The notes under the pieces are model-generated. The model was not told the DNA's origin. It ran no database searches and worked only from the letters and a program-made list of their open reading frames with translations. The translations under genes were made by a program, and so were the position numbers. Below, piece by piece: positions 4,966 through 63,594 of a DNA stretch of 64,000 nt; the stretch's first letter is position 1; each line of letters starts with the position of its first letter. This DNA is from Macrostomum lignano (Eukaryota): contig NIVC01000713.1 of assembly GCA_002269645.1 (NCBI GenBank), positions 310,001 to 374,000 on the forward strand, in the 5' to 3' direction.

Positions 4966-5048
4966 TACGAGGCGATGCTGAGAGAGATGATGGAGCGATT
5001 ATAAAGGCGATAAAGGCGATTGCCCCTCACTCAAAGTACTGAACTCAC

Positions 5049-5851
5049 CTCGTCTCGACACTTTCTTCGATGGCGACGCGGCAGCAGCGGCAGCGGCGGC
5101 GGCAGCCTCCAGCTCGTGCATCACAGGCCGGGTCAGATGCGGCTGGAAGAAGCCGGAGTTGCCGCTCAGGCCGATGCCACGCCAAGGCTCGCCGCCCATC
5201 CGCTTGTCCAGCACAAACAGGGTGTCGCCAGCAGCGAAGTGCAACTGTTCGCGAACTGCCGGCGGGCTGGGGCTCGACTCCAGGGCCACGTGCTTCTCCG
5301 GGATGATCTTGGGCAGGTGGGCGGCGATCTCAGCAAAGGTCGGCCGCCGTTTATAATCGTGATCCCAGCACTTAAGCATCAGGGCGTAGTGAGCAGTCGG
5401 ACAGGCGTCCGGGCGCTCCAGCCGGCCAAGCTGAGGCTCGTCAATGGTCTCAAGAATCTGCTGCCCGGTGAGGCCGGCCCAGGGCTGGAAGCCGTATGAG
5501 AACATCTCCCACAGGGTGACGGCGTAGGCCCACACGTCAGACGCGGAGGTGAATCTCAGGTAATTAATACTCTCAGGTGCGCACCAGGCTATTGGCAGTT
5601 TCAGGTTCACATTGAAATTTGTCTGATAATACTCCTTGCCCAGCTGCAGCGCTCGGCTCATGCCGAAGTCTGAGATCTTCACTCGATCCTTGGTGAACAC
5701 CAAAATGTTTCTGGCCGCCAAGTCGCGATGGATGAGGCGCTGATTCTCCAAGTAGGACATGCCTTCGGCGATCTGCTGGGCGAAGCTGCACAGCGCGCCA
5801 ACGTGAAAACTGCAGCGCAGGGCCGCCTCGCGGACGCATTCGAGTAGGGAT
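5049..5851 (-). CDS. PR2: Ack-like/PR2 kinase exon 3 (kinase C-lobe and SH3)
   Basis: Acceptor CCAG|A completes AGA. Contains HRDLAARN, DFG and YYQTNFNVNLKLPIAWCAPESINYLRFTSASDVW (PR2/Ack-like signature), then an SH3-like segment. Phase-1 donor GTGAGT. Confidence 0.96.
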
Positions 5852-5904
5852 CTGGCGACGGGGGATCGGGATTAGCAGATAAACCCGATGATAAAACCCT
5901 GGCA

Positions 5905-6742
5905 TATCAGAGGTGTTACAGTAGATTAACCTAACAATAACACTCTGGGATATACATGTAGGGGTGTTACAGCAAATTAACCCATCAATAACACCCTGGA
6001 ATACAGGGGTGTTACAGCAGATTAACCTAACAATAACACACTGGGATACAGGGGTGTTACAGTAGATTAACCTAACAATAACACCCTGGGATACAGGGGT
6101 GTTACAGTAGATTAACCGATCAATAACACCCTGGGATATAGAGGTGTTACAGCAGATTAACCCATCAATAACACCCTGGGATACAGGGGTGTTACAGCAG
6201 ATTAACCCAACAATAACACCCTGGGGCTATAGGGGTGTTACAGCAGATTAACCCATCAATAACATCCTGGGGCTATAGGGGTGTTACAGCAGATTAAACC
6301 ATCAATAAATAACACCCTGGGATACAGGGATGTTACAGCAGATTAACCCAACAATAACACCCTGAGATACAGGGGTTTTACATTAGATTTAACTAACAAT
6401 AACACCCTGGGATACAGGGGTGTTACAGCAGATTAACCCAACAATAACACTCTGGGATATACATGTAGGGGTGTTACAGCAAATTAACCCATCAATAACA
6501 CCCTGGGTGTTACAGCAGATTAACCCATCAATAACACCCTGGGATACAGGGGTGTTACAGCAGATTAACCCAACAATAACACCCTGGGATACAGGGCTGT
6601 TACAGTAGATTAACCTAACAATAACACTCTGGGATGTAGGGGTGTTACAGCAAATTAACCGATCAATAACACCCTGGGATATAGAGGTGTTACAGCAGAT
6701 TAACCCATCAATAACACCCTGGCGTAGGGGTGTTACAGCAGA
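5905..6742. repeat. ~45-bp minisatellite (GTGTTACAGCAGATTAACCCATCAATAACACCCTGGGATACAGGG)
   Basis: Tandem diverged units in kinase intron 2. Confidence 0.93.
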
Positions 6743-7354
6743 TGAATCGCTAAGCAAAACGTCACCAACAGCAAAGTCAAATTAAAAAGACTCATAAAAG
6801 TCAAGCGCATTAGTTAATTGCGCACCTGGACCCAGACCCTATTCGTCAAGAATAAAATAATTTGCAACGCCAATCGATCACACAGTCGCACACTGGGGTG
6901 TTGGTGGTAATTTGGACCACCAAACAAGAGACCTCCGGTGCCATAAAATATTCAAAAGTCAGTCTGTTGGATACTTGCTAATAAGCAACATATCCAGCCA
7001 TAAAATAAGCATTACTGAATGTAGCCATTATACATGCATAAGCAATTTACCAGCCATACCCATAGTGTAACCGTTTCAATAATACGAAACCGTATAAACC
7101 ATATATGGTAATGTGCACTTCTAATATAATTGCATATGATTTCTTTTCCTACTTTGCCATTAGTTTAACACTTAGCGATACTGCGAAATAAAGGCAATAC
7201 TGAGCCGGCATCGCAACACTGCGAATTGCTTCGTAACTGAAAGCAATTCATTGCCTGCGCATTCTCTTTAGTTGTTCTTTCTTGTAACAGCTTAAAGCCA
7301 AGCTCTAGGGACACTTTGATGAGGAATGTAAAAGATTACATCTGGCCAAGCAAC

Positions 7355-7962
7355 TGAAACTCTGAGAGGCTGGCCCAGCAACTGAGGATCTGAGAGGCTG
7401 GCCCAGCAACTGAGGATCTTAGAGGCTGGCCCAGCAACTGAGGATCTGAGAGGCTGGCCCAGCAACTGAGGATCTGAGAGGCTGGCCCAGCAACTGACAC
7501 TCTAGGAGGCTGGCCCAGCAACTGAGGATCTGGGAGGCTGGCCCAGCAACTGAGGATCTTAGAGGCTGGCCCAGCAACTGAGGATCTGAGAGGCTGGCCC
7601 AGCAACTGAGGATCTGAGAGGCTGGCCCAGCAACTGACACTCTAGGAGGCTGGCCCAGCAACTGAGGATCTGGGAGGCTGGCCCAGCAACTGAGGATCTT
7701 AGAGGCTGGCCCAGCAACTGAGGATCTGAGAGGCTGGCCCAGCAACTGAGGATCTGAGAGGCTGGCCCAGCAACTGAGGATCTGAGAGGCTGGCCCAGCA
7801 ACTGACACTCTAGGAGGCTGGCCCAGCAACTGAGGATCTGGGAGGCTGGCCCAGCAACTGAGGATCTGGGAGGTTGGCCCAGCAACTGAGGATCTGGGAG
7901 GTTGGCCCAGCAACTGAGGATCTGAGAGGCTGGCCCAGCAACTGAGAATATGAGAGGCTGGC
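7355..7962. repeat. 28-bp minisatellite (GAGGCTGGCCCAGCAACTGAGGATCTGA), copy 1
   Basis: Tandem units ending about 10 nt from the exon-2 donor. Confidence 0.95.
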
Positions 7963-7973
7963 GAACATCTCAC

Positions 7974-8551
7974 CTGAGAGGCGCGAGCTCAGTGACCATC
8001 TGGAACTTGTCCTCCCCAATGGCCAGGCCGTACAGCCGTACAATGTTCCTGTGCTCGATGCCGTGCATGTTGGTGACCTCCTTGAGAAAGTCTGCAGCCT
8101 GGCCGGGCGACAGACGGTCCTTGTCCATGGCCTTCACGGCCACCTGTATCCGCTGGCCCCTGTCGCCGCCGGGACTCCAAATGGCCTGATAGACCCGGCC
8201 GAACTCGCCCTCGCCAAGGACCTTGCCGAGCTCGATCTGGTCTGGCGGAATCAAATAGCTGGTTGAGGGCGGCAGCCGCAGGGCGCCAACCAGGAGGTCC
8301 GGGCCGCCTGCGCCAACTCCGCCGCCGCTTCCCGCTCCACCGCCGCCGGATGCGCCGCAGTCATCCTCGCCTCCTCCACCGCGCCCGGCGCCGCCGCCGC
8401 GCGCAGTCAGCCGTTTGCGCAATCGGCCAACAGCGGACTGGGGGCACTCGCGCAGGAAAAACTTTCTTAGCCGACGCATCTCCGGCTTTGTGAGGCCGAT
8501 GTCGGCCAGGTCTTCATCTTCGACGTATTTTAATTGACTGACGCTGGTCAC
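7974..8551 (-). CDS. PR2: Ack-like/PR2 kinase exon 2 (rest of SAM, kinase N-lobe)
   Basis: Acceptor TTTAACTAG|GTG. Encodes GEGEFG G-loop, VAVK and VTELAPL. Phase-2 donor GTGAGA at 7973. Confidence 0.95.
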
Positions 8552-22289: not shown

Positions 22290-23056
22290 TACAGTATAGC
22301 TGGTAGAGATAAGGGACATGTCCGAGTAGCGGAGCATCCAGTTATCAGACAGTCCGAGGATTGCCTTGAAATCGTCTCCAACCAGCTTGCAGATAGCCTC
22401 ATGATCCACGACGCCATTTGCCGGAAAGTCTCGCCCAGTAGCAGGCGACGGACGATCGATCCCTGTCCTCGCTCACGGCACTTCAAGCAGGCCCACTGGA
22501 CCATGCAGGAAACTGCAAACACAATCAGGTGCTGGCACCTGCTGCTCGACATCAGCCGCAACACAGCTTCCATCCAGTTGGTTTGGGTGCCGGCACACTG
22601 CGGCATCCCCCTCAATGAGGCGGCAGACCGAGCTGCCGGATTGGCCAGAAGACTGTCTCAAAGTGACGCACCGGTCTCTTTCAGCGCTGCCAAGGCGGCC
22701 ATTCGGCGCGACCGGCGCGCCCTGGAAGGCAGCATCCTCCCAGCGCGCCGGCCGGCTTTCCGTGCGAGAAATCGGCTAGAGCAGACTGTGGTGTGCCAGC
22801 TCAAGGCTGGCGCGTCGATGCTCTGCGCCGAAGACTCCGCCTGGGTTTGACCGACTCCCCTCAATGCCCGGATTGCGGGGAGACTGATGACAGTGAACAC
22901 GCTTTATTCCGCTGCCCCCGTGGAGACGCTCGGCGCATGCCCCTGATCGGCAACGATACCGAGCGCCTCCTACGGGTTCCGGGACTTGGGCTCTCGTTCC
23001 TACGAAGCCTGGGGCGCTGGCCCCCGTCTGTCAGAAGAAGAAGAAGAAGAAGAAGC
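22290..23056 (+). mobile_element. 5'-truncated, decayed LINE 3' end (RNase H + CCHC knuckle + (AAG)n tail)
   Basis: IQLVWVPAHCGIPLNEAADRAA (RNase H of RNase-H-bearing non-LTR elements), CPDCGETDDSEHALFRCP, then an (AGA)n tract at ~23033-23055. Frameshifted. Confidence 0.85.
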
Positions 23057-39740: not shown

Positions 39741-40257
39741 ATGACCTACAACCTGGTGTGGATGATCTGCAGACAGCAGTGCTTGTCATGGTCATTAGTG
39801 GGTCATAAATCTAAATCAATGTACTTTTAAACAGAGGGAGGCAGTGTAGAGGAGGCTGGGTCGTATGACTCTTGACACTGACAGATTCGTGTGTTGGAGT
39901 TCGAAATATGCAGCTACGGTGATAACTAAATAATTTACAATTTGTAATATTCACAGTAAAGTGCAGACTCCACACTATCGTGCTGCATGCAGCCCAGTCC
40001 CCATTGCATTCCTTAGCTTAATAAAGCATTTATTATAAAGCTAGTCATGGGAGCACGGAAACTTCCACTTGACATGCTTGCCATTAATCTTATCGGTTCA
40101 GTCAGCTCCTGTGCGAGTAGGCCCTCGAAACAGTAAATCTAGTGAAGAAATTCGCAGAATACCAGTTAGGATTGATACTGACCATGGTTTAGAGTGCGTT
40201 TATGGCTCTAACTAAAGTGCAATAGTGGTTTAGAAAGTGCATTTTGTAATACATGAA

Positions 40258-41849
<1,592 letters not shown>

Positions 41850-42505: not shown

Positions 42506-42623
42506 ATGGCCTCAACTGAACAGAGAAACGACGGTGGCGGAGGCGGCGGAGGTGGCGGAGGTGGCGGAGGCGGCGCCAATGATGTCAGCAGGCAGAGGAA
42601 ACGTATTGGGCTGCCGCCTGACT
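42506..42623 (+). CDS. Tau/MAP2-like microtubule-associated protein, first coding exon
   Basis: Acceptor TTTGGTAG at 42499, GCCATGG start, poly-Gly, phase-1 donor T|GTGAGT. Confidence 0.75.
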
Positions 42624-42627
42624 GTGA

Positions 42628-43410
42628 GTCAGTGGGGTGGTGGGTGAAGTCAGTGGGGTGGTGGGTGAAGTCAGTGGGGTGGTGGGTGAAGTCAGTGGGG
42701 TGGTGGGTGAAGTCAGTGGGGTGGTGGATGTAGAAGTCAGTGGGGTGGTGGGTGAAGTCAGTGGGGTGGTGGATGTAGAAGTCAGTGGGGTGGTGGGTGA
42801 AGTCAGTGGGGTGGTGGATGTAGAAGTCAGTGGGGTGGTGGGTGAAGTCAGTGGGGTGGTGGATGTAGAAGTCAGTGGGGTGGTGGGTGAAGTCAGTGGG
42901 GTGGTGGGTGAAGTCAGTGGGGTGGTGGGTGAAGCCAGTGGGGTGGTGGGTGAAGTCAGTAGGGTGGCGGGTGAAGCCAGTGGGGTGGTGGGTGAAGTCA
43001 GTGGGGTGGTGGATGTAGAAGTCAGTGGGGTGGTGGGTGAAGCCAGTGGGGTGGTGGGTGAAGTCAGTGGGGTGGTGGATGTAGAAGTCAGTGGGGTGGT
43101 GGATGAAGTCAGTGGGGTGGTGGATGAAGTCAGTGGAGTGGTGGATGAAGTCAGTGGGGTGGTGGGTGAAGTCTGTGGGGTGGTGGGTGAAGCCAGTGGG
43201 ATGGTGGGTGAAGCCAGTGGGGTGGTGGGTAGAAGTCAGTGGTTGGTGGGTGTAAAAGTCAATGGGGTGGTAGGTGAAGTCAATAGGGTGGTGGGTGATA
43301 TCAGTGGGGTGGTGGGTGAAGTCAATGGGGTGGTGGGTGACATCAGTGGGGTGGTGGGTGAAATAAATGGTGTGAAGAGTGAGGTCAATGGGGTGGTGGG
43401 TGAGGTGGTA
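42628..43410. repeat. 21-bp G-rich minisatellite (GTGGTGGGTGAAGTCAGTGGG) in tau-like intron 1
   Basis: Starts immediately after the donor. Confidence 0.95.
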
Positions 43411-43446
43411 TATAACAATTTTAAACTTTTTCCCCCGACACCGCAG

Positions 43447-43512
43447 GGCAAGCTGAACAAGGAAAGGAAATTCCACCAAAGGTCGACACGCTCAATCAGG
43501 AATACAAGCCCA
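43447..43512 (+). CDS. Tau/MAP2-like protein exon 2 (start of repeat 1: PKVDTLNQEYKP)
   Basis: Acceptor CACCGCAG|GG (phase 1), phase-1 donor A|GTAAGT. Confidence 0.82.
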
Positions 43513-43596
43513 GTAAGTGCGCTGATAGAAGATTTATTAACCCCCGCACTTTCCAGACTATTTCAGAGAAAAACCATCTCTCAAAATTATTACTAG

Positions 43597-43709
43597 GCGG
43601 CGGTAACCGAAAGATATTCAAAGAGAAGTTGGACTTTTCCAAGAACGCCAAGCCAAAGGTGGAAACCATGAGTAACAAGGACTACCAACCAGGCGGAGGA
43701 ACCAAGAAG
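43597..43709 (+). CDS. Tau/MAP2-like protein exon 3 (GGNRKIFKEKLDFSKNAKPKVETMSNKDYQPGGGTKK)
   Basis: Acceptor TTATTACTAG|GC, phase-0 donor AAG|GTTCAG. PGGG motif and K..LDFS pattern of tubulin-binding repeats. Confidence 0.85.
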
Positions 43710-44174
43710 GTTCAGTCTTACAGCTTTGTTGTTTTTCAATTGTTTAATACACAAAATCTGTTTTCAGATTAACAGTAGTTGCGTTAACCGTTTGAAGCTC
43801 AACTGAAAGTTTAACAGTTTGCATGGCTAACTAAAGGCACAGAACTATATTTGCAATTCAAAATATTTTTTCTCACTAACAGCCAGCACTAATTATTAAT
43901 CTGCATCAGGTGTTCCAACAGCGGTTCACCTGGAGCGTGACCTCTCGGATCGGGTCGCTTGAGAATTTGCGGCACAGACCAAGCGGAGGCGACAGAAAAG
44001 TGCATGATTAATTAATTAATGAGAGAATTATTCTTTATGACTTCCTCACTTAGCTGAATTTGCAGTGAACAAGATTAGCGCTGCACTTTAGACTTCATGC
44101 ACGTGTGGGTCCGCAGGTTCAGGTGACCTTCTAATTCAGTTAGAATAGTGTTAAGCCCCTCTGTGTAGATAAAC

Positions 44175-44769
<595 letters not shown>

Positions 44770-45249
44770 CTACATCAGACCCGTACATTTACATGCACAA
44801 TGCTAATCTGTTAAGTCAATAAGTAAAATGAAATCTCAGTTTCCTCAGTGAAGCACAACAATCGGAAGAATAGATTAGCAATCCCTACGTGTTCTCAGTT
44901 AGCGCACAACAGTTAGCATGATATTTATATACATGTAAGTACTATACTGCATACACGAGCCACACACGAATTGTCACAGTGCATTTACCACCAAAGACTT
45001 CGGTGGACAAATCTGCCCGCAATCAATACCCGAGAAAATATTAATTACCGGCCAAAAACGCCTAAAGTCAGGGTGAGAATAATTAATATATATATGAATC
45101 ACATCGCTCAGTCGAGTGCAAACAAAGGGCGCTGGTTGTAACACGCCCGATTATTTAGTAAAACAACGGCTATATAATAATTTTTCCGTTTTTAACATGC
45201 AATTTGATTTTTCTATTTTGAATGTCGATTAAAACTACAAGGGTTTAAG

Positions 45250-45745
45250 TAAGGGTAAGGGTATAGGGACAGGGTAAGACTAGGGTAGGGATAGGGTTAG
45301 ACTAGAGTGGGGATAGGGTAAGACTAGGGTAGGGAGGTTAGGGTAGGGAGGTAGTGTTTGGAGGATAGAGTAGGGTAGAGTAGGGAGGGTAGTGTTTGGG
45401 GGAGTAGGCAAGGGTAGGGAAGGTAGGGTAGGGATGGTAGAGTAAGGTAGGGTAGGGAGAGTAGGGTAGGGTAGGGAGGGTAGTGTTGGGGAAAGTAGAA
45501 TAGGCTAGGGTAGGGCGTAGTAGGTAGGGAGGGTAGGGTAGGGCAGGGTAGGTAGGGAAGGTATGGTAGGTAGGGTAGGGAATAGATAAGGTAGGGAAGG
45601 TAGGTAGGGTAGGGAATGTATGGTAGGTAGGGTAAGTAGGGTAGGGCATGGTACATGTACTCGTATGCAGGGAGGGTAGCGTCGGCATGGTAGGTAGGTA
45701 GGGTAGGGTGGGCATGGTAGGTAGTCAGGGTAGGGTAGGGAGGAG
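45250..45745. repeat. Degenerate (GGGTA)n G-rich tract
   Basis: Direct inspection. Confidence 0.85.
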
Positions 45746-46202
45746 GTACATTTACAAGTAGGTTAGGATCGGAATATAAATTTTAATAGACCGAATTAGT
45801 CTATGGCAAAACCCCATGCAGCGCTGTGCGTTCTCCATAGCATAACACGAGTAAAAGTACTAGAGATACGACAAATGCATGCTCCTTAATTTCCGGCCAC
45901 AGGCTCATATCTCAATATGCCGCCTGCCAGCTCATATCGTAGCTTGAATTGCCACGCTAACAGAATATTCGTTGCCCGCGAGGTCGTCTAAAGTACTACA
46001 AAGATATTGTGGTTTTGAAGTTCACCGCGTCCTTTTATACCCAGCGGTCGACTTCAATTCAGCTGGCATCTGCACATTAATCGCTTATAAAAAGCTCACA
46101 TATATATATCTACTATATAGTACTTTTAGTAGCGCTAAAATACCACGCGGCTGGAAATTTTGAAAAGCAAAACTCTGACAGAAATGACACAATTTCTTTT
46201 AG

Positions 46203-46298
46203 ATCTTCAAAGAACGTGTGAATTTCTCGGAGAAGGCCACGCCGAGGTTAAACACGATGGAGAACAAAGACTACGAGCCGAAGCGGAACGAGATTAAG
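46203..46298 (+). CDS. Tau/MAP2-like protein exon 4 (one 32-aa repeat)
   Basis: TTTCTTTTAG|ATC...AAG|GTAATT, phase 0-0. IFKERVNFSEKATPRLNTMENKDYEPKRNEIK aligns to the preceding repeat. Confidence 0.85.
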
Positions 46299-46424
46299 GT
46301 AATTGCAGATCATATTAATGAGTTCAGTTTGGTTAGGTGGTAGGTCACTGGTGCCACCTCTGGCTTAAGTATACTCACAACCATACAAGACGTGACACAT
46401 TGAAAGCGTTCACGAGTATTTTTC

Positions 46425-47335
46425 TGACAGGTGAGCCAGTGGGATGTCAGGTGAGCCAGTGATATGTCAGGTAATACAGTGGTATGTCAGGCGAGTCACT
46501 GGGTCAGGCGAGTCACTGGGTCAGGCGAGTCACTTGGGTCTCAGGTGAGTGTATGTCAGGTAATACAGTGATATGTCAGGTAATACAGTGGTATGTCAGG
46601 CGAGTCACTGGGTCAGGCGAGTCACTTGGGTCTCAGGTGAGTGTATGTCAGGTAATACAGTGGTATGTCAGGTAATACAGTGGTATGTCAGGTAATACAG
46701 TGGTATGTCAGGCGAGTCACTTGGGTCTCAGGTGAGTGTATGTCAGGTAATACAGTGGTATGTCAGGTAATACAGTGGTATGTCAGGTAATACAGTGGTA
46801 TGTCAGGTAATACAGTGGTATGTCAGGTAATACAGTGGTATGTCAGGTAATACAGTGGTATGTCAGGTAATACAGTGGTATGTCAGGTAATACAGTGGTA
46901 TGTCAGGTAATACAGTGGTATGTCAGGTGAGCCAGTGGCATGTCAGGTAATACAGTGGTATGTCAGGTAATACAGTGGTATGTCAGGTAATACAGTGGTA
47001 TGTCAGGTGATACAGTGGTATGTCAGGTGAGCCAGTGGCATGTCAGGTAATACAGTGGTATGTCAGGTGATACAGTGGTATGTCAGGTAATACAGTGGTA
47101 TGTCAGGTGAGCCAGTGGCATGTCAGGTAATACAGTGGTATGTCAGGTGATACAGTGGTATGTCAGGTAATACAGTGGTATGTCAGGTGAGCCAGTGGTA
47201 TGTCAGGTAATACAGTGGTATGTCAGGTGAGCCAGTGGCATGTCAGGTAATACAGTGGTATGTCAGGTGAGCCAGTGATATGTCAGGCGAGCCAGTGGCA
47301 TGTCAGGTGAGCCAGTGGTATGTCAGGCGAGTCAG
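46425..47335. repeat. 20-bp minisatellite (ATGTCAGGTAATACAGTGGT) in tau-like intron 4
   Basis: About 45 units. Confidence 0.95.
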
Positions 47336-47387
47336 TAGGGACCAGGCTCCCAGAAGCTCTCCTGCACATGTCCGGACACCGCCGCAG

Positions 47388-48979
47388 GTGTACCACGAGC
47401 GCCTGCCATGGCTGGAGGTTGAAAGTAACCGACCCAGACTCCAGCTGGTCTCGCAACAGTCTGACGCGATCAAGGACAAGCCTCAGCAGCAGGAGCAGCA
47501 ACCAGCACCAACCAACGGTTCGGAATCGCCGAGACAGCAGCAGCGGACGGCGGCCGCGGGAGCAGCCATGCGGCAGCGGCAGCGAGAATACGACCAGCGG
47601 TACCGAGGCGAGGCAAAAAGCAGCCCCGCAGTAGGGGTGTTCGGGTCGGCCATTTTTTCGGGGTTCGGGGTTCACCCCGAACCCGGTACCCCTACCCCGA
47701 ACCCCGAACCCCGTCCCGAACATTTCTTCCAACCCCGAACCCCGAACCCGGTACCAAAACCCGACCCGACCCCGAACGTAACCCCGAACATTTTCACGCT
47801 TATTTTGGTCAATCATTTTAATAAATTCAGTTTTCAGTTTTCAATTTTTCAGTTTTCAGTTTTGAATTTCAGTTTTAAAATCAGTTTTATACATTGAGAT
47901 GTGCCTTAACAGCTTCAACCACTTAGCCTTGTGGCTTTATTTCCCTTAGCTACTCTACAACTAGGAAAAGAAATATGAAACACTTCTTGCAATGGGATTG
48001 GGATTGAGATGGAAGGAATACCAAGACCCAAGATCTAATAGTAAGATACATGAAAGTTCACAACTAAAATCAGGACCATTTCGTACCTATACTTACAACG
48101 AAATTGCTTTCATAGTAATATTACATCTATGAGCTTATTTAAGCTGCAAAAATAGAGTACAATAAAATTAGATTATACCCTGTAGTGTAGATATCAGTAG
48201 AGATAGAACTAGAGCGATAAAGAGATAGCACAGATAAAACAATGAAACAATGAAACAGGAGAGTTAATCACAAATATATATTTATTTTTACTTTTGACTA
48301 CAGTTAACAGTAAGTCAGTAGTGGTATAACAGAATTGCTATGTAAAAACTAAAGTGACGTCTTTACATAAAATTGTATGCTGATATGAGTAGGTAATCAT
48401 TGTGATAATTGATTATTGGCGACTGATGCGTGGAGAATAATAGTGTATTTATAAATTTTAAGCTTCCTCATCCAATCCAGAAGTTCAGACCATGTTACAC
48501 GTAGCACATGTAAAATTATTACTGAACGTAATTTTTTAAATCATCAACTGCAAGACTGAATGGGTCGAAAAACGACAATCGTTATTTACCAGAAAGTGTA
48601 AATGAATCCATGGTTCTATCTGCTATTTCCGTTTCAAATTGTATGTAAAATATAACTTGAGTTGTACCTGAAACTCAATGCATATCTTTCGCATTGTGGA
48701 TTTTGCATAAGGAGTAAAAAGTGCTTGAAAATACTCTTGAGAATGATAATTGTTCAAAACCCCGAAAACCCCGAAAACCCGGTGGCCAAACCCGACCCGA
48801 ACCCCGAACCCGGTACCCCTACCCCGAACCCCGAACCCGACCCGGAGCACCTACCCCGAACCCCGAACCCGGTACCAAAACCCGACCCGAAACCCGACCC
48901 GACCCCGAACCCCGAACACCCCTACCCCGCAGCGACCAAGCCGCGTCAGCTCGACAACGAAAGAAGCGAGCAAAAGTAG
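47388..48979 (+). CDS. Tau/MAP2-like protein last exon (47388-47631 + 48933-48979), interrupted by hAT element
   Basis: Acceptor CCGCCGCAG|GTG. Removing the element plus one TSD restores ...KSSPAATKPRQLDNERSEQK* in frame. Predicted pre-insertion protein ~227 aa. Confidence 0.75.
47632..48924. mobile_element. Non-autonomous hAT-type DNA transposon (1293 bp)
   Basis: Perfect 14-bp TIR TAGGGGTGTTCGGG / CCCGAACACCCCTA, 8-bp TSD CCCCGCAG (47624-47631 and 48925-48932), subterminal CCCGAA(C) motif arrays at both ends. No transposase ORF recognised. Confidence 0.92.
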
Positions 48980-49079
48980 ATGCCCAGCCGCGACTTTGTG
49001 CGAGTTTGCATGTACTTCTTCAGACTGACGTTTCAAGATTTGTAAAACTTTATTGACATCTTCAGTGATGGGTGTACGA

Positions 49080-50525
49080 GTAGATGTGGCCTTTATTGGC
49101 ATCTAGAGAGGGGTATAGATGTGGCCATTATTGGAATCTAGAGTGGGGTATAGATGCGGCCATTATTGGAATCTAGAGTGGGGTATAGATGTGGTCATTA
49201 TTGGCATCTAGAGAGGGGTATAGATGTGGCCATTATTGGCATCTAGAGTGGGGTATAGATGTGGCCTTTATTGGCATCTAGAGAGGGGTATAGATGTGGC
49301 CATTATTGGAATCTAGAGTGGGGTATAGATGCGGCCATTATTGGCATCTAGAGTGGGGTATAGATGTGGCCTTTATTGGCATCTAGAGAGGGGTATAGAT
49401 GTGGCCATTATTGGCATCTAGAGTGGGGTATAGATGTAGATGTGGCCTTTATTGGCATCTAGAGAGGGGTATAGATGTGGCCATTATTGGCATCTAGAGT
49501 GGGGTATAGATGTGGTCATTATTGGCATCTAGAGAGGGGTATGGATGCGGCCATTATTGGCATCTAGAGTGGGGTATTGATGCGGCCATCATTGGCATCT
49601 AGAGTGGGGTATAGATGTGGCCATTATTGACATCTAGAGTGGGGTATAGATGTGGCCATTATTGGCATCTAGAGTGGGGTATAGATGTGGTCATTATTGG
49701 CATCTAGAGTGGGGTATAGATGTGGCCATTATTGGCATCTAGAGTGGGGTATAGATGTGGTCATTATAGGCATCTAGAGTGGGGTATTGATGCGGCCATC
49801 ATTGGCATCTAGAGTGGGGTATAGATGTGGCCATTATTGACATCTAGAGTGGGGTATAGATGCAGCCATTATTGGCATCTAGAGTGGGGTATTGATGCGG
49901 CCATCATTGGCATCTAGAGTGGGGTATAGATGTGGCCATTATTGGCATCTAGAGAGGGGTATAGATGTGGCCATTATTGGCATCTAGAGTGGGGTATAGA
50001 TGTGGCCATTATTGGCATCTAGAGTGGGGTATAGATGTGGCCATCATTGGCATCTAGAGTGGGGTATAGATGTGGTCATTATTGGCATCTAGAGTGGGGT
50101 ATAGATGTGGCCATTATTGGCATCTAGAGTGGGGTATAGATGTGGTCATTATTGGCATCTAGAGTGGGGTATTGATGCGGCCATCATTGGCATCTAGAGT
50201 GGGGTATAGATGTGGCCATTATTGACATCTAGAGTGGGGTATAGATGCAGCCATTATTGGCATCTAGAGTGGGGTATTGATGCGGCCATCATTGGCATCT
50301 AGAGTGGGGTATAGATGTGGCCATTATTGGCATCTAGAGAGGGGTATAGATGTGGCCATTATTGGCATCTAGAGAGGGGTATAGATGTGGCCATTATTGG
50401 CATCTAGAGTGGGGTATAGATGTGGCCATTATTGGCATCTAGAGTGGGGTATAGATGTGGCCATTATTGGCATCTAGAGTGGGGTATAGATGTGGCCATT
50501 ATTGGCATCTAGAGTGGGGTATAGA
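49080..50525. repeat. 35-bp minisatellite (ATAGATGTGGCCATTATTGGCATCTAGAGTGGGGT) between converging gene ends
   Basis: About 41 units. Confidence 0.96.
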
Positions 50526-57595: not shown

Positions 57596-58149
57596 CTCAG
57601 CCAGACAGCTCAGCTGGGGCTTGGCCGCCTCCAGCAGCACCCGGGCCATTCGCGGCTCCAGCGGCAACGCCAGCATATCCTTGCCAATTGGCGTCAATCT
57701 CCAGCCACTTTTAAGGCTACTACTAACAGTAGTAGTCAGCTCGGCCGCGCCCAGCTGTTTCAGCATGGCCAGACCGGCAGACACGCCAGCTGGCGGCAGT
57801 GGATCTAACAAAGGAAACTCAGCCGGCTGCTTGGCTCCAACGCCCAATAGGCTGAGCAGTGCGGTGCCCAGGCTGGCTCTGAGCAGCTCCGGCACCGGCT
57901 GTTCGGGCATCTGCTCCAGCAGCTCGGCGTTGGTGTACAGCCGGTGGCAGCAGCCGGGGCCTGACGGGCTGCCCGGCCGGCCCGCTGCCAGGCCTGAGCC
58001 TGGCTGATGCGCTCCACCGACAGCCGCTCGATCCAGGAGCCCGCGGCCGAGGCGGGGGCGGAGCGGACCTTGGCGCGGCCGCAGTCCACTACGCAGCGAA
58101 CTCCGGGTATCGTTAGGGAGGACTCGGCCAGGTTGGTTGCTAGGATCAC
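57596..58149 (-). CDS. DHX33: DHX33 exon 4 (motifs V, VI, HA2); contains apparent 1-nt frameshift near 57958
   Basis: [27 protein letters not shown] in one frame and CCHRLYT...[19 protein letters not shown] in another. Exon is 554 nt between two phase-0 sites (555 needed). Confidence 0.88.
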
Positions 58150-58197
58150 CTGGGGCGGGTGGGGGAGAGGAATTTAATACTGGAATGGTAGGATCGG

Positions 58198-59030
58198 AGG
58201 GGCACACAGACAGACAGAAACGCACAGACAGGAAGGCACATACCAGACAGGAAGGCAAACACAGGAAGGCACAGGCAGGAAGGCACATACCAGACAGGAA
58301 GGCAAACACAGGAAGGCACAGGCAGGAAGGCACATACCAGACAGGAAGGCAAACACAGGAAGGCACAGGCAGGAAGGCACAGACGGGAAGGCAGACAGGC
58401 ACAGACAGGAAGGCACAGGCAGGAAGGCACAGACAGGCACAGACAGGAAGGCACAGACAGGAAGGCACAGACAGGAAGGCACAGACTGGAAGGCACAGAC
58501 AGGCACAGACAGGAAGGCACAGACAGGAAGGCAAGGCAGGAAGGCACAGGCAGGAAGGCACAGACAGGCACAGACAGGAAGGCAAGGCAGGAAGGCACAG
58601 GCAGGAAGGCACAGACAGGCACAGACAGGAAGGCACAGACAGGAAGGCACAGACAGGAAGGCACAGACAGGAAGGCACAGACAGGAAGGCACAGACAGGA
58701 AGGCACAGACAGGAAGGCACAGACAGGAAGGCACAGACAGGCACAGACAGGAAGGCACAGACAGGAAGGCACAGACTGGAAGGCACAGGCAGGAAGGCAC
58801 AGGCAGGAAGGCACAGACAGGCACAGACAGGAAGGCACAGACAGGAAGGCACAGACAGGAAGGCACAGACAGGAAGGCACAGACAGGAAGGCACAGACTG
58901 GAAGGCACAGACAGGAAGGCACAGACAGGAAGGCACAGACAGGAAGGCACAGACAGGAAGGCACAGACAGGAAGGCACAGACAGGAAGGCACAGACAGGA
59001 AGGCACAGACAGGAAGGCACAGGCAGACTG
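58198..59030. repeat. 14-bp minisatellite (GCACAGACAGGAAG)
   Basis: Fills DHX33 intron 3. Confidence 0.96.
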
Positions 59031-59048
59031 ATCTACAGCAGCACTCAC

Positions 59049-59350
59049 TTTCCGCGCGGGTCTCTCTGTCTGGTCCAGCGGCGCCAGCGCTTTCAACTGC
59101 AGGCTGGCTGGCAAGGCGGCGTACAGCGGCAGCGGCAGGAGGCCGCCGTTGCCGCGGAGCTCCTGAGAGGCCTGGCGCAGCAGATGCCGCAACTCGGCGA
59201 TGTCATCCTCGCCGGTGAGGAACACGAGAATGTCGTGCGTCGGTTTCAGCGGCCGACTGCGGTGCAGCTGCAGGACGGCCACTAGGGCGGCAGAGACATA
59301 GTCGGAGACTGGACGGTCCACCGACATCAGCTCGATGGGGTACTGGCGGC
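59049..59350 (-). CDS. DHX33: DHX33 exon 3 (RecA2 start)
   Basis: CTTCCCAG|GC, GRQYPIE...[12 protein letters not shown]...PLYAALP, phase-0 donor GTGAGT. Confidence 0.94.
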
Positions 59351-62890: not shown

Positions 62891-62949
62891 AGTGGAGAGC
62901 AGGAAACATCACCTTAGCAAACCAACCACAACCAGTGCATCAAACAAAC

Positions 62950-63489
62950 CTTGTAGCCAACAAAGGAACCAAGCGGCCCATTGTTGGCCTCCAGTGCCAC
63001 TCGCTGAGCCAAACTGATGGCGGCAATGCGCCTCGGCTGAGTGATAGCTACCCGGGTCTGCTTACTGCCCGAGGCTGCTTCTAAAAGAAACTGCGGCACC
63101 TGGGTACTCTTGCCAGATCCGGTGGACGATATCAAAACTAAACACCTGTGCTGCCGGATGCAGGCCAGCAGGTCGCGCCTGTGCTGCCAAATTGGCAAAC
63201 TGCGCCTCTCTTCTAGAAGAGGGTTGTTATCGGCAATACTACTAGCGCTAGTAGTAGTTAATGGATTCGTATCCGCGGTCATGTCAGCAGCAGCAGGACG
63301 AGTTTGATGATGTTGTTTCTGCCATTTCATCTTCCTTAATAACATCTTTTGCTGTTTGCGATGCTTTGCTTTGCTTTGATTTTGTACAGAATGCTGTTGC
63401 TGCTGCCGCAGATCTTGCTTCTTCTGTTGCTTGTGACCGTGACCGTGACGGTGCTTGTGCTTTGGCTTGTGCTTGCCGCCTTTGCTCAT
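62950..63489 (-). CDS. DHX33: DEAH-box RNA helicase DHX33, exon 1 (upstream in-frame ATG at 63540 possible)
   Basis: Basic K/H/Q-rich N-terminus, then RRSLPIW, motif [32 protein letters not shown]. Phase-0 donor GTTTGT. Confidence 0.9.
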
Positions 63490-63594
63490 TGCTGTGTTAG
63501 CTTTCTGCCATGAACAGAAATTATGGACATGAAATGCCATGAGAGGGCGATTCTCAAGGGGCCGTAACAAACTCGACTTTAATACTTTGAACTT

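Follow-up and report, generated by a model that had tools for sequence, protein, structure and literature searches.

The last coding exon of a tau-like gene of Macrostomum lignano is interrupted by a transposable element at positions 47632-48924 of the window (the whole 64-kb stretch of DNA analysed in this work). In our assessment, a non-autonomous hAT element probably inserted here very recently and in the ordinary way, at the 3' end of the coding sequence in a gene copy that is redundant; only the C-terminal tail of the encoded protein would have been altered, and no functional intron gained. Seen in this way, the locus neatly illustrates how a transposon has entered the coding end of a gene a very short time ago, and the insertion probably survives owing to spare gene copies. 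The original prediction had described a hAT-type element with its TSD and TIR that interrupts the final coding exon of a tau-like gene, and each of these features was found at the position given there.

The tau/MAP-like gene and the inserted element

Judging by its deduced exons, the gene at 42506-48979 encodes a tau/MAP-like microtubule-binding repeat protein. The gene model, built from the DNA with GT-AG junctions, consists of the following parts:

42506-42623, plus strand: exon 1
43447-43512, plus strand: exon 2
43597-43709, plus strand: exon 3
43910-43999, plus strand: exon 4
46203-46298, plus strand: exon 5
47388-47631, plus strand: last coding exon (exon 6), part 5' of the insertion (VYHERLPW...GEAKSSPA)
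48933-48979, plus strand: last coding exon (exon 6), part 3' of the insertion, encoding (A)TKPRQLDNERSEQK, with the TAG stop codon at 48977-48979
50622: first AATAAA downstream of the native stop codon, located after a 35-bp tandem array

When the element and one copy of the TSD are removed, the six exons, separated by five GT-AG introns, form a single ORF of 257 aa with the C-terminal end ...SSPAATKPRQLDNERSEQK (also written as ...GEAKSSPAATKPRQLDNERSEQK). The fragment assembled from the exons matches the Pfam family PF00418 (Tau and MAP tubulin-binding repeat) over two stretches (E = 3.5e-20, 72 bits at a gathering cut-off of 27), and its homologues carry PF00418 as well. Apart from this score above the gathering cut-off, the likeness to Tau, MAP2 and MAP4 lies in the repeats of ~31 residues ending in P(G/S)GG (e.g., VTSRIGSLENLRHRPSGGDRK), while the protein differs from them in being very short, in possessing an N-terminal glycine run and a Q-rich tail, and in its last 15 residues, which are common only to Macrostomum paralogues. 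The insertion point falls in a GCG (alanine) codon, the first of these last 15, about 15-16 codons before the stop and 3' of every repeat.

Tandem arrays largely occupy the introns and the flanking DNA of the gene: 36 copies of a 21-bp unit in intron 1 (42627-43403), (AGAC)n together with a degenerate TAGGG-like array in intron 4 (44177-44769 and 45281-45740), 40 copies of a 20/40-bp unit in intron 5 (46437-47327), 399 copies of (AGAT)n upstream of the gene (40257-41847), and, on its 3' side, 41 copies of a very regular 35-bp unit (49081-50525), which begin ~100 bp past the stop codon. Since the first downstream AATAAA appears only at the far side of the latter array, the 3' UTR may hold a 1.4-kb minisatellite.

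The borders of the element were established from its TIR and TSD by reading the sequence of 47300-49300 and were checked by script. They delimit an element of 1293 bp with the TIR pair TAGGGGTGTTCGGG...CCCGAACACCCCTA and the following anatomy:

47624-47631, plus strand: left TSD copy, 8 bp, CCCCGCAG, identical to the right copy at 8/8 positions
47632-48924, unstranded: non-autonomous hAT-like element (TIR, TSD, stop codons in all six frames, AT-rich core)
47632-47645, plus strand: left TIR, TAGGGGTGTTCGGG, 14 bp, perfect
47632-47790, plus strand: left subterminal region, GC 0.63, a 42-nt G-rich arm with 3 TTCGGG followed by a C-rich stretch with 8 CCCGAA
48745-48924, plus strand: right subterminal region, GC 0.64, with 11 CCCGAA hexamers, supplying the C-rich tract before the candidate splice acceptor
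48911-48924, minus strand: right TIR, exact reverse complement of the left TIR (14/14)
48925-48932, plus strand: right TSD copy, CCCCGCAG, the final AG of which (48931-48932) is the candidate acceptor

As the element came with one additional 8-bp copy of the TSD, the insertion added 1301 nt to the exon. The combination of a perfect inverted repeat (14 bp or longer) with perfect 8-bp direct repeats on either side is encountered at this single site in the whole 64-kb window and in none of 200 composition-preserving block shuffles, and the element still remained the only such site in the window when the inverted repeat was relaxed to 10 bp (mean of 0.025 in the shuffles); thus, the signature is not a product of chance.

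By its anatomy, which combines an 8-bp TSD, a short TIR starting with TAGGG, subterminal hexamers and an unrelated filler core, the sequence at 47632-48924 is classified here as a non-autonomous hAT element. The termini of hAT elements follow the consensus YARNG, which the perfect TIR fits, and their target preference is nTnnnnAn, with which CCCCGCAG agrees in the A at position 7 and disagrees in the C at position 2, a single site being no test of a preference. Both the 8-bp TSD, present on the two flanks, and the length of the TIR correspond to the hallmarks of hAT elements, i.e., 8-bp TSDs and TIRs of 10-25 bp (PMC3942097). Short repeats are concentrated within ~200 bp of each end: 19 of the 21 CCCGAA copies of the window, as well as 3 of its 7 copies of TTCGGG, lie within the terminal 160-180 bp of the element, and by analogy these hexamers are inferred to be putative transposase-binding sites. 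The core is AT-rich (GC 0.31), and the element is devoid of coding capacity, as each of the six frames contains 19-30 stop codons. Inspection by eye of the window ORFs of at least 130 aa revealed no transposase, and no Rfam family scored above threshold anywhere in the window.

The closest model is provided by the maize Ac/Ds system, which is characterized by 8-bp TSDs, an 11-bp TIR printed as TAGGGATGAAA and hexamer motifs in the subterminal ~200 bp at either end (PMC3260210). The flatworm element shares with it the length of the TSD, the short TIR beginning with TAGGG (its first 8 bases, TAGGGGTG, differ from TAGGGATG of Ac by one mismatch) and the hexamer repeats packed into the terminal ~200 bp; like Ds, it is non-autonomous, about 1 kb in size and filled with an unrelated core. 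Unlike Ac/Ds, it resides in a flatworm instead of a plant, and its subterminal hexamer is CCCGAA and not AAACGG.

The two ends of the element are not plain inverted copies of each other: at the left, the inverted 42-nt G-rich arm is followed by a C-rich stretch (within 47632-47790) that matches the right end (48795-48910) in direct orientation at 84% identity. In addition, GGTACCCCTACCCCGAA, which mimics the right terminus together with the first bases of the TSD, recurs inside the element at ~47683 and ~48810, and the related GCACCTACCCCGAA is located at ~48845. The directly repeated ends and the recurring GGTACCCCTACCCCGAA may be a vestige of termini that were duplicated or nested.

Empty-site copies of the gene

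The best protein matches to the gene are five UniProt models of M. lignano itself, which are near-identical to the window exon by exon, the translated 5' leader included. Four of the five read across the insertion site, each in its own frame, with the residues PAAT in P0001, PQRPS in P0003, PAAD in P0007 and SQRT in P0002, whereas the fifth, P0009, is so noisy near the site that no call can be made. All four readings require contiguous DNA of the form ...CCCCGCAG|CGACC with the G kept; hence, copies of the gene lacking the element exist. As GT-AG excision at the element borders would lose this G, the empty-site models are not products of such excision. The tail of P0003 (...QRPSRVSSTTKEASKS) was considered as possible evidence for splicing with a -1 shift and rejected, as the Q codon (CAG CGA), and with it the G, is retained there; its frame shift is explained instead by an extra C in the upstream CCCC run, which is typical of indel-ridden models. 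In general, the M. lignano models hop between frames, which is consistent with an indel-rich early assembly. A look-up for transcript or locus evidence returned no record for the window ORF 47280-47897 or for P0001.

The UniProt names of P0001, P0003 and P0009 ('Methylcytosine dioxygenase TET', 'Microtubule-binding protein TANGLED' and 'Transmembrane protein') do not fit these proteins: all three are models of this one small tau-like gene that hop between frames, and several of them run through intronic or UTR sequence.

Redundant copies of the gene are to be expected, given that duplicated blocks with identities of 95% or more add up to 180 Mb in the M. lignano assembly (PMC5730564). In accordance with the biology of hAT elements, a transposase supplied by another element would have recognized the 14-bp TIRs and the CCCGAA subterminal hexamers, and a staggered 8-bp cut at CCCCGCAG would have given rise to the TSD. 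The insertion was presumably tolerated owing to the near-identical empty-site copies in the partly duplicated genome.

Predicted transcripts, candidate splice sites and introners

The possible fates of a transcript of the interrupted gene were computed in silico from the following features:

47631-48932, plus strand: candidate intron GCA|GTAGGG...CCCCTACCCCGCAG|CG, 1302 nt, one base longer than the insertion
47820-47825, plus strand: AATAAA within the element, 5' of the read-through stop codon; another at 48161
47895-47897, plus strand: read-through stop codon
48933-48949, plus strand: exon stretch with the downstream AGs 48939-48940 and 48948-48949

The candidate GT is composed of the last G of the left TSD and the first T of the element. 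Removal of 47631-48932 would delete one G and shift the frame by -1, resulting in a new tail of 31 aa (RPSRVSSTTKEASKSRCPAATLCEFACTSSD), a protein of 273 aa in total and a stop codon at 49026-49028. Combination of GT47631 with AG48940 or AG48949 would restore the frame with the loss of 3 aa (254 aa) or 6 aa (251 aa), respectively, and read-through would add a proline-rich tail of 88 aa derived from the element (330 aa in total). The region of microtubule-binding repeats is intact in every computed outcome. On all these points the original prediction proved accurate: the 1301-nt insertion and the 1302-nt interval, the lost G with the 31-aa tail, the restoration of the frame at the downstream AGs, the 88-aa read-through product with its stop at 47897 and the retention of the repeats were each reproduced.

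For an ordinary insertion, which we regard as the best explanation, the default transcript would enter the element, and the last 15 residues would be swapped for the 88-aa proline-rich tail; alternatively, the transcript would end early at the AATAAA inside the element. Whichever end is used, the microtubule-binding repeats would stay whole. The GT...AG at the borders would then be a by-product of a terminus starting with TA placed beside a TSD that happens to end in AG, although it may allow some cryptic splicing by analogy with maize Ds1. By our own reasoning, a border GT/AG of this kind is expected for about 1/16 of random targets of a TA-ended element, and it is therefore no sign of adaptation to splicing.

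Cryptic splicing of a fraction of the transcripts, that is, a proto-intron in which GT47631 or the GTs at 47637, 47663, 47670 and 47686 are joined to AG48932, AG48940 or AG48949 with a mixture of frameshifted and in-frame tails as in Ds1, is a possible but rather doubtful alternative. The candidate sites are within the range of the native sites of the gene, the donors of which are ACT|GTGAGT, CCA|GTAAGT, AAG|GTTCAG, AAA|GTGCAT and AAG|GTAATT: A at position -1, as in the candidate GCA|GTAGGG, occurs in two of these five (CCA|GTAAGT and AAA|GTGCAT), and two native acceptors share with the TSD the ending CCGCAG. The interval of 1302 nt is typical for the introns of the species, which average 1.1-1.4 kb (PMC5730564). 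Furthermore, the ends of the element can base-pair with each other (-62 kcal/mol, a prediction), which would bring the donor and the acceptor together. Native-like sites, an intron-like length and pairing ends, taken together with the availability of several in-frame donor/acceptor pairs, make cryptic splicing plausible. Its precedent is Ds1, a hAT element that, as far as the work of Wessler (1991) is described in PMC5432752, is alternatively spliced from an exon through three donors and two acceptors, all situated no more than ~35 bp from its ends. The flatworm element resembles Ds1 and Ds in exons in its exonic position and in the GT/AG motifs at or near its ends, which form candidate cryptic splice sites. 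It differs from Ds1, in which the sites come from inside the element, in that the donor G and the acceptor AG are contributed by the TSD, and splicing was demonstrated for Ds1, while the sites of the flatworm element are candidates.

Against a proto-intron speaks that its best-placed pair of sites is out of frame. The in-frame alternatives rely on exon AGs that have no pyrimidine tract of their own or on weak donors, and folding of the RNA of 47600-47800 is predicted to engage the candidate donor in the base pairs of a hairpin of -73 kcal/mol (z = -3.4). Finally, GTs competing with the candidate donor are found nearby at 47637, 47639, 47645, 47663, 47670 and 47686, and two of these contexts, GGG|GTTCGG and GGG|GTTCAC, are similar to AAG|GTTCAG among the native donors; such an abundance of cryptic GTs argues against one clean intron. 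The 'near-perfect new intron' of the original prediction is thus not upheld, being out of frame at its best pair, hidden at the donor in a predicted hairpin and based on a GT/AG pair expected for about 1/16 of random targets. If the element were spliced after all, it would offer the rare sight, in an animal, of an intron in the act of arising.

A further-reaching possibility is that a hAT-derived family systematically seeds spliceable introns in Macrostomum genes, the present copy with its AG-ending TSD being a near miss, or an alternatively spliced copy, caught soon after insertion; we consider this very unlikely. Such a family would belong to the introners, known from the MITE-like elements of Micromonas and Aureococcus and from wider surveys (bioRxiv 2022.06.06.494994, PMC12130899, review PMC11282704), with which the element shares the non-autonomous TIR organization and a splice site built from the TSD and the element. 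TIR DNA transposons, for the most part non-autonomous, account for about 82% of the classified introner families (PMC12130899), and some families borrow the 5' or the 3' splice site from the TSD (bioRxiv 2022.06.06.494994). Certain described families change the length of the mRNA by a few bases or codons, as exemplified by one with an 8-bp TSD which lengthens the mRNA by 12 nt (bioRxiv 2022.06.06.494994). Added to this is the C-rich right end of the element, which could act as a pyrimidine tract.

The rest of the case for an intron-seeding family is one of logic. The original prediction held that a TSD ending in AG is by itself enough to make any insertion of such an element spliceable. It was right in that GT and AG do arise at the borders, and wrong in detail, since an AG-ending TSD invariably makes the GT...AG interval exceed the insertion by one base, and the frame is shifted (-1) in every case. 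By construction, exact excision needs a TSD ending in AGG, which yields AG|G·TAGGGG on the left and ...CCCCTA·NNNNNAG|G on the right; the interval then amounts to 1 + L + 7 = L + 8 nt (where L is the length of the element), so that the original mRNA is restored at a proto-splice site, with the much stronger donor AG|GTAGGG. Neither the window nor the collections searched yielded an AGG-TSD copy realizing such exact excision. The AGG-target rule would supply a concrete genome-wide prediction on whether hAT elements seed introns in flatworms.

The evidence on the family itself points the other way. Introners are defined by many near-identical, actually spliced and mostly frame-preserving copies, unlike the single copy dealt with here, the obvious GT-AG pair of which would cause a -1 frameshift. 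Frame-preserving excision is the one defining feature of introners that was tested, and the element lacks it for GT47631/AG48932 (1302 nt removed versus 1301 nt inserted); on this feature, its membership in the introner class fails. The search for further copies with the TIR, suggested by the original prediction for the genome, was run on the 64-kb window, which contains at least three genes, and both BLASTN of the element and the TIR search with up to 2 mismatches returned self-matches only. Six matches to TAGGGGTG at 5959-6725 were rejected as TIR copies, being part of an unrelated ~46-bp minisatellite. Peptides derived from the element (six-frame translation of the left end) were compared with the protein collection, in which none of 8000 word-sharing candidates scored. 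Of two scans of metagenome DNA for the element, the first found nothing, and the second returned 119 loci, all single matches, largely from gut, soil and marine-type contigs; as none of them (0/119) has an inverted partner with a TSD, they are regarded as chance matches. Introners are, moreover, rare in animals, where they were detected in two groups only among 835 animal and plant genomes (bioRxiv 2022.06.06.494994), and our literature search yielded no description of introners or of hAT or MITE families in Macrostomum.

With no further copy in the window or in the collections searched, the claim of an intron generator at the level of a family rests on one insertion. The generation of introns by transposable elements through TSD-derived sites is of an already known kind, as Ds1 and the introners originating from TIR transposons have been described, some of the latter with sites borrowed from the TSD; the 'undescribed hAT-derived intron generator' of the original prediction is therefore not supported, and the case as it stands adds nothing beyond the splicing of Ds1 and the introner surveys.

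That the element was misplaced into the exon during assembly, which could be imagined in a very repeat-rich genome known as hard to assemble (PMC5730564) and would agree with the empty site of the homologous models, is extremely improbable, since the TIRs are perfect and bordered on each side by a faithful 8-bp copy of the exon sequence, which indicates real transposition and not mis-joining.

Other loci in the window

Exons of a TNK/ACK-type tyrosine kinase are located at 4999-8551 on the minus strand, with the SAM_TNK domain and the N-lobe of the kinase at 7970-8551 and the C-lobe at 4999-5760 (Pfam E = 9e-52). The ~46-bp minisatellite mentioned above occupies 5880-6740 in the kinase intron between the two lobes and shares AGGGGTGTTAC with the TIR of the transposon, apparently by coincidence.

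An ORF at 22401-22850 on the plus strand contains VWVPAHCGIPLNEAADRAA and shows a weak match to RNase H (PF00075, 24.3 bits at a cut-off of 25.8); it is probably a remnant of a retroelement. On the minus strand, the ORFs at 62914-63570 and 58146-59327, broken up by long cysteine/leucine-rich tandem repeats, gave no Pfam match as fragments. They contain a helicase-like GSGKST Walker A motif and VFLTGEDDI, and, by reading of the motifs alone, they are reminiscent of a DEAH-box helicase.
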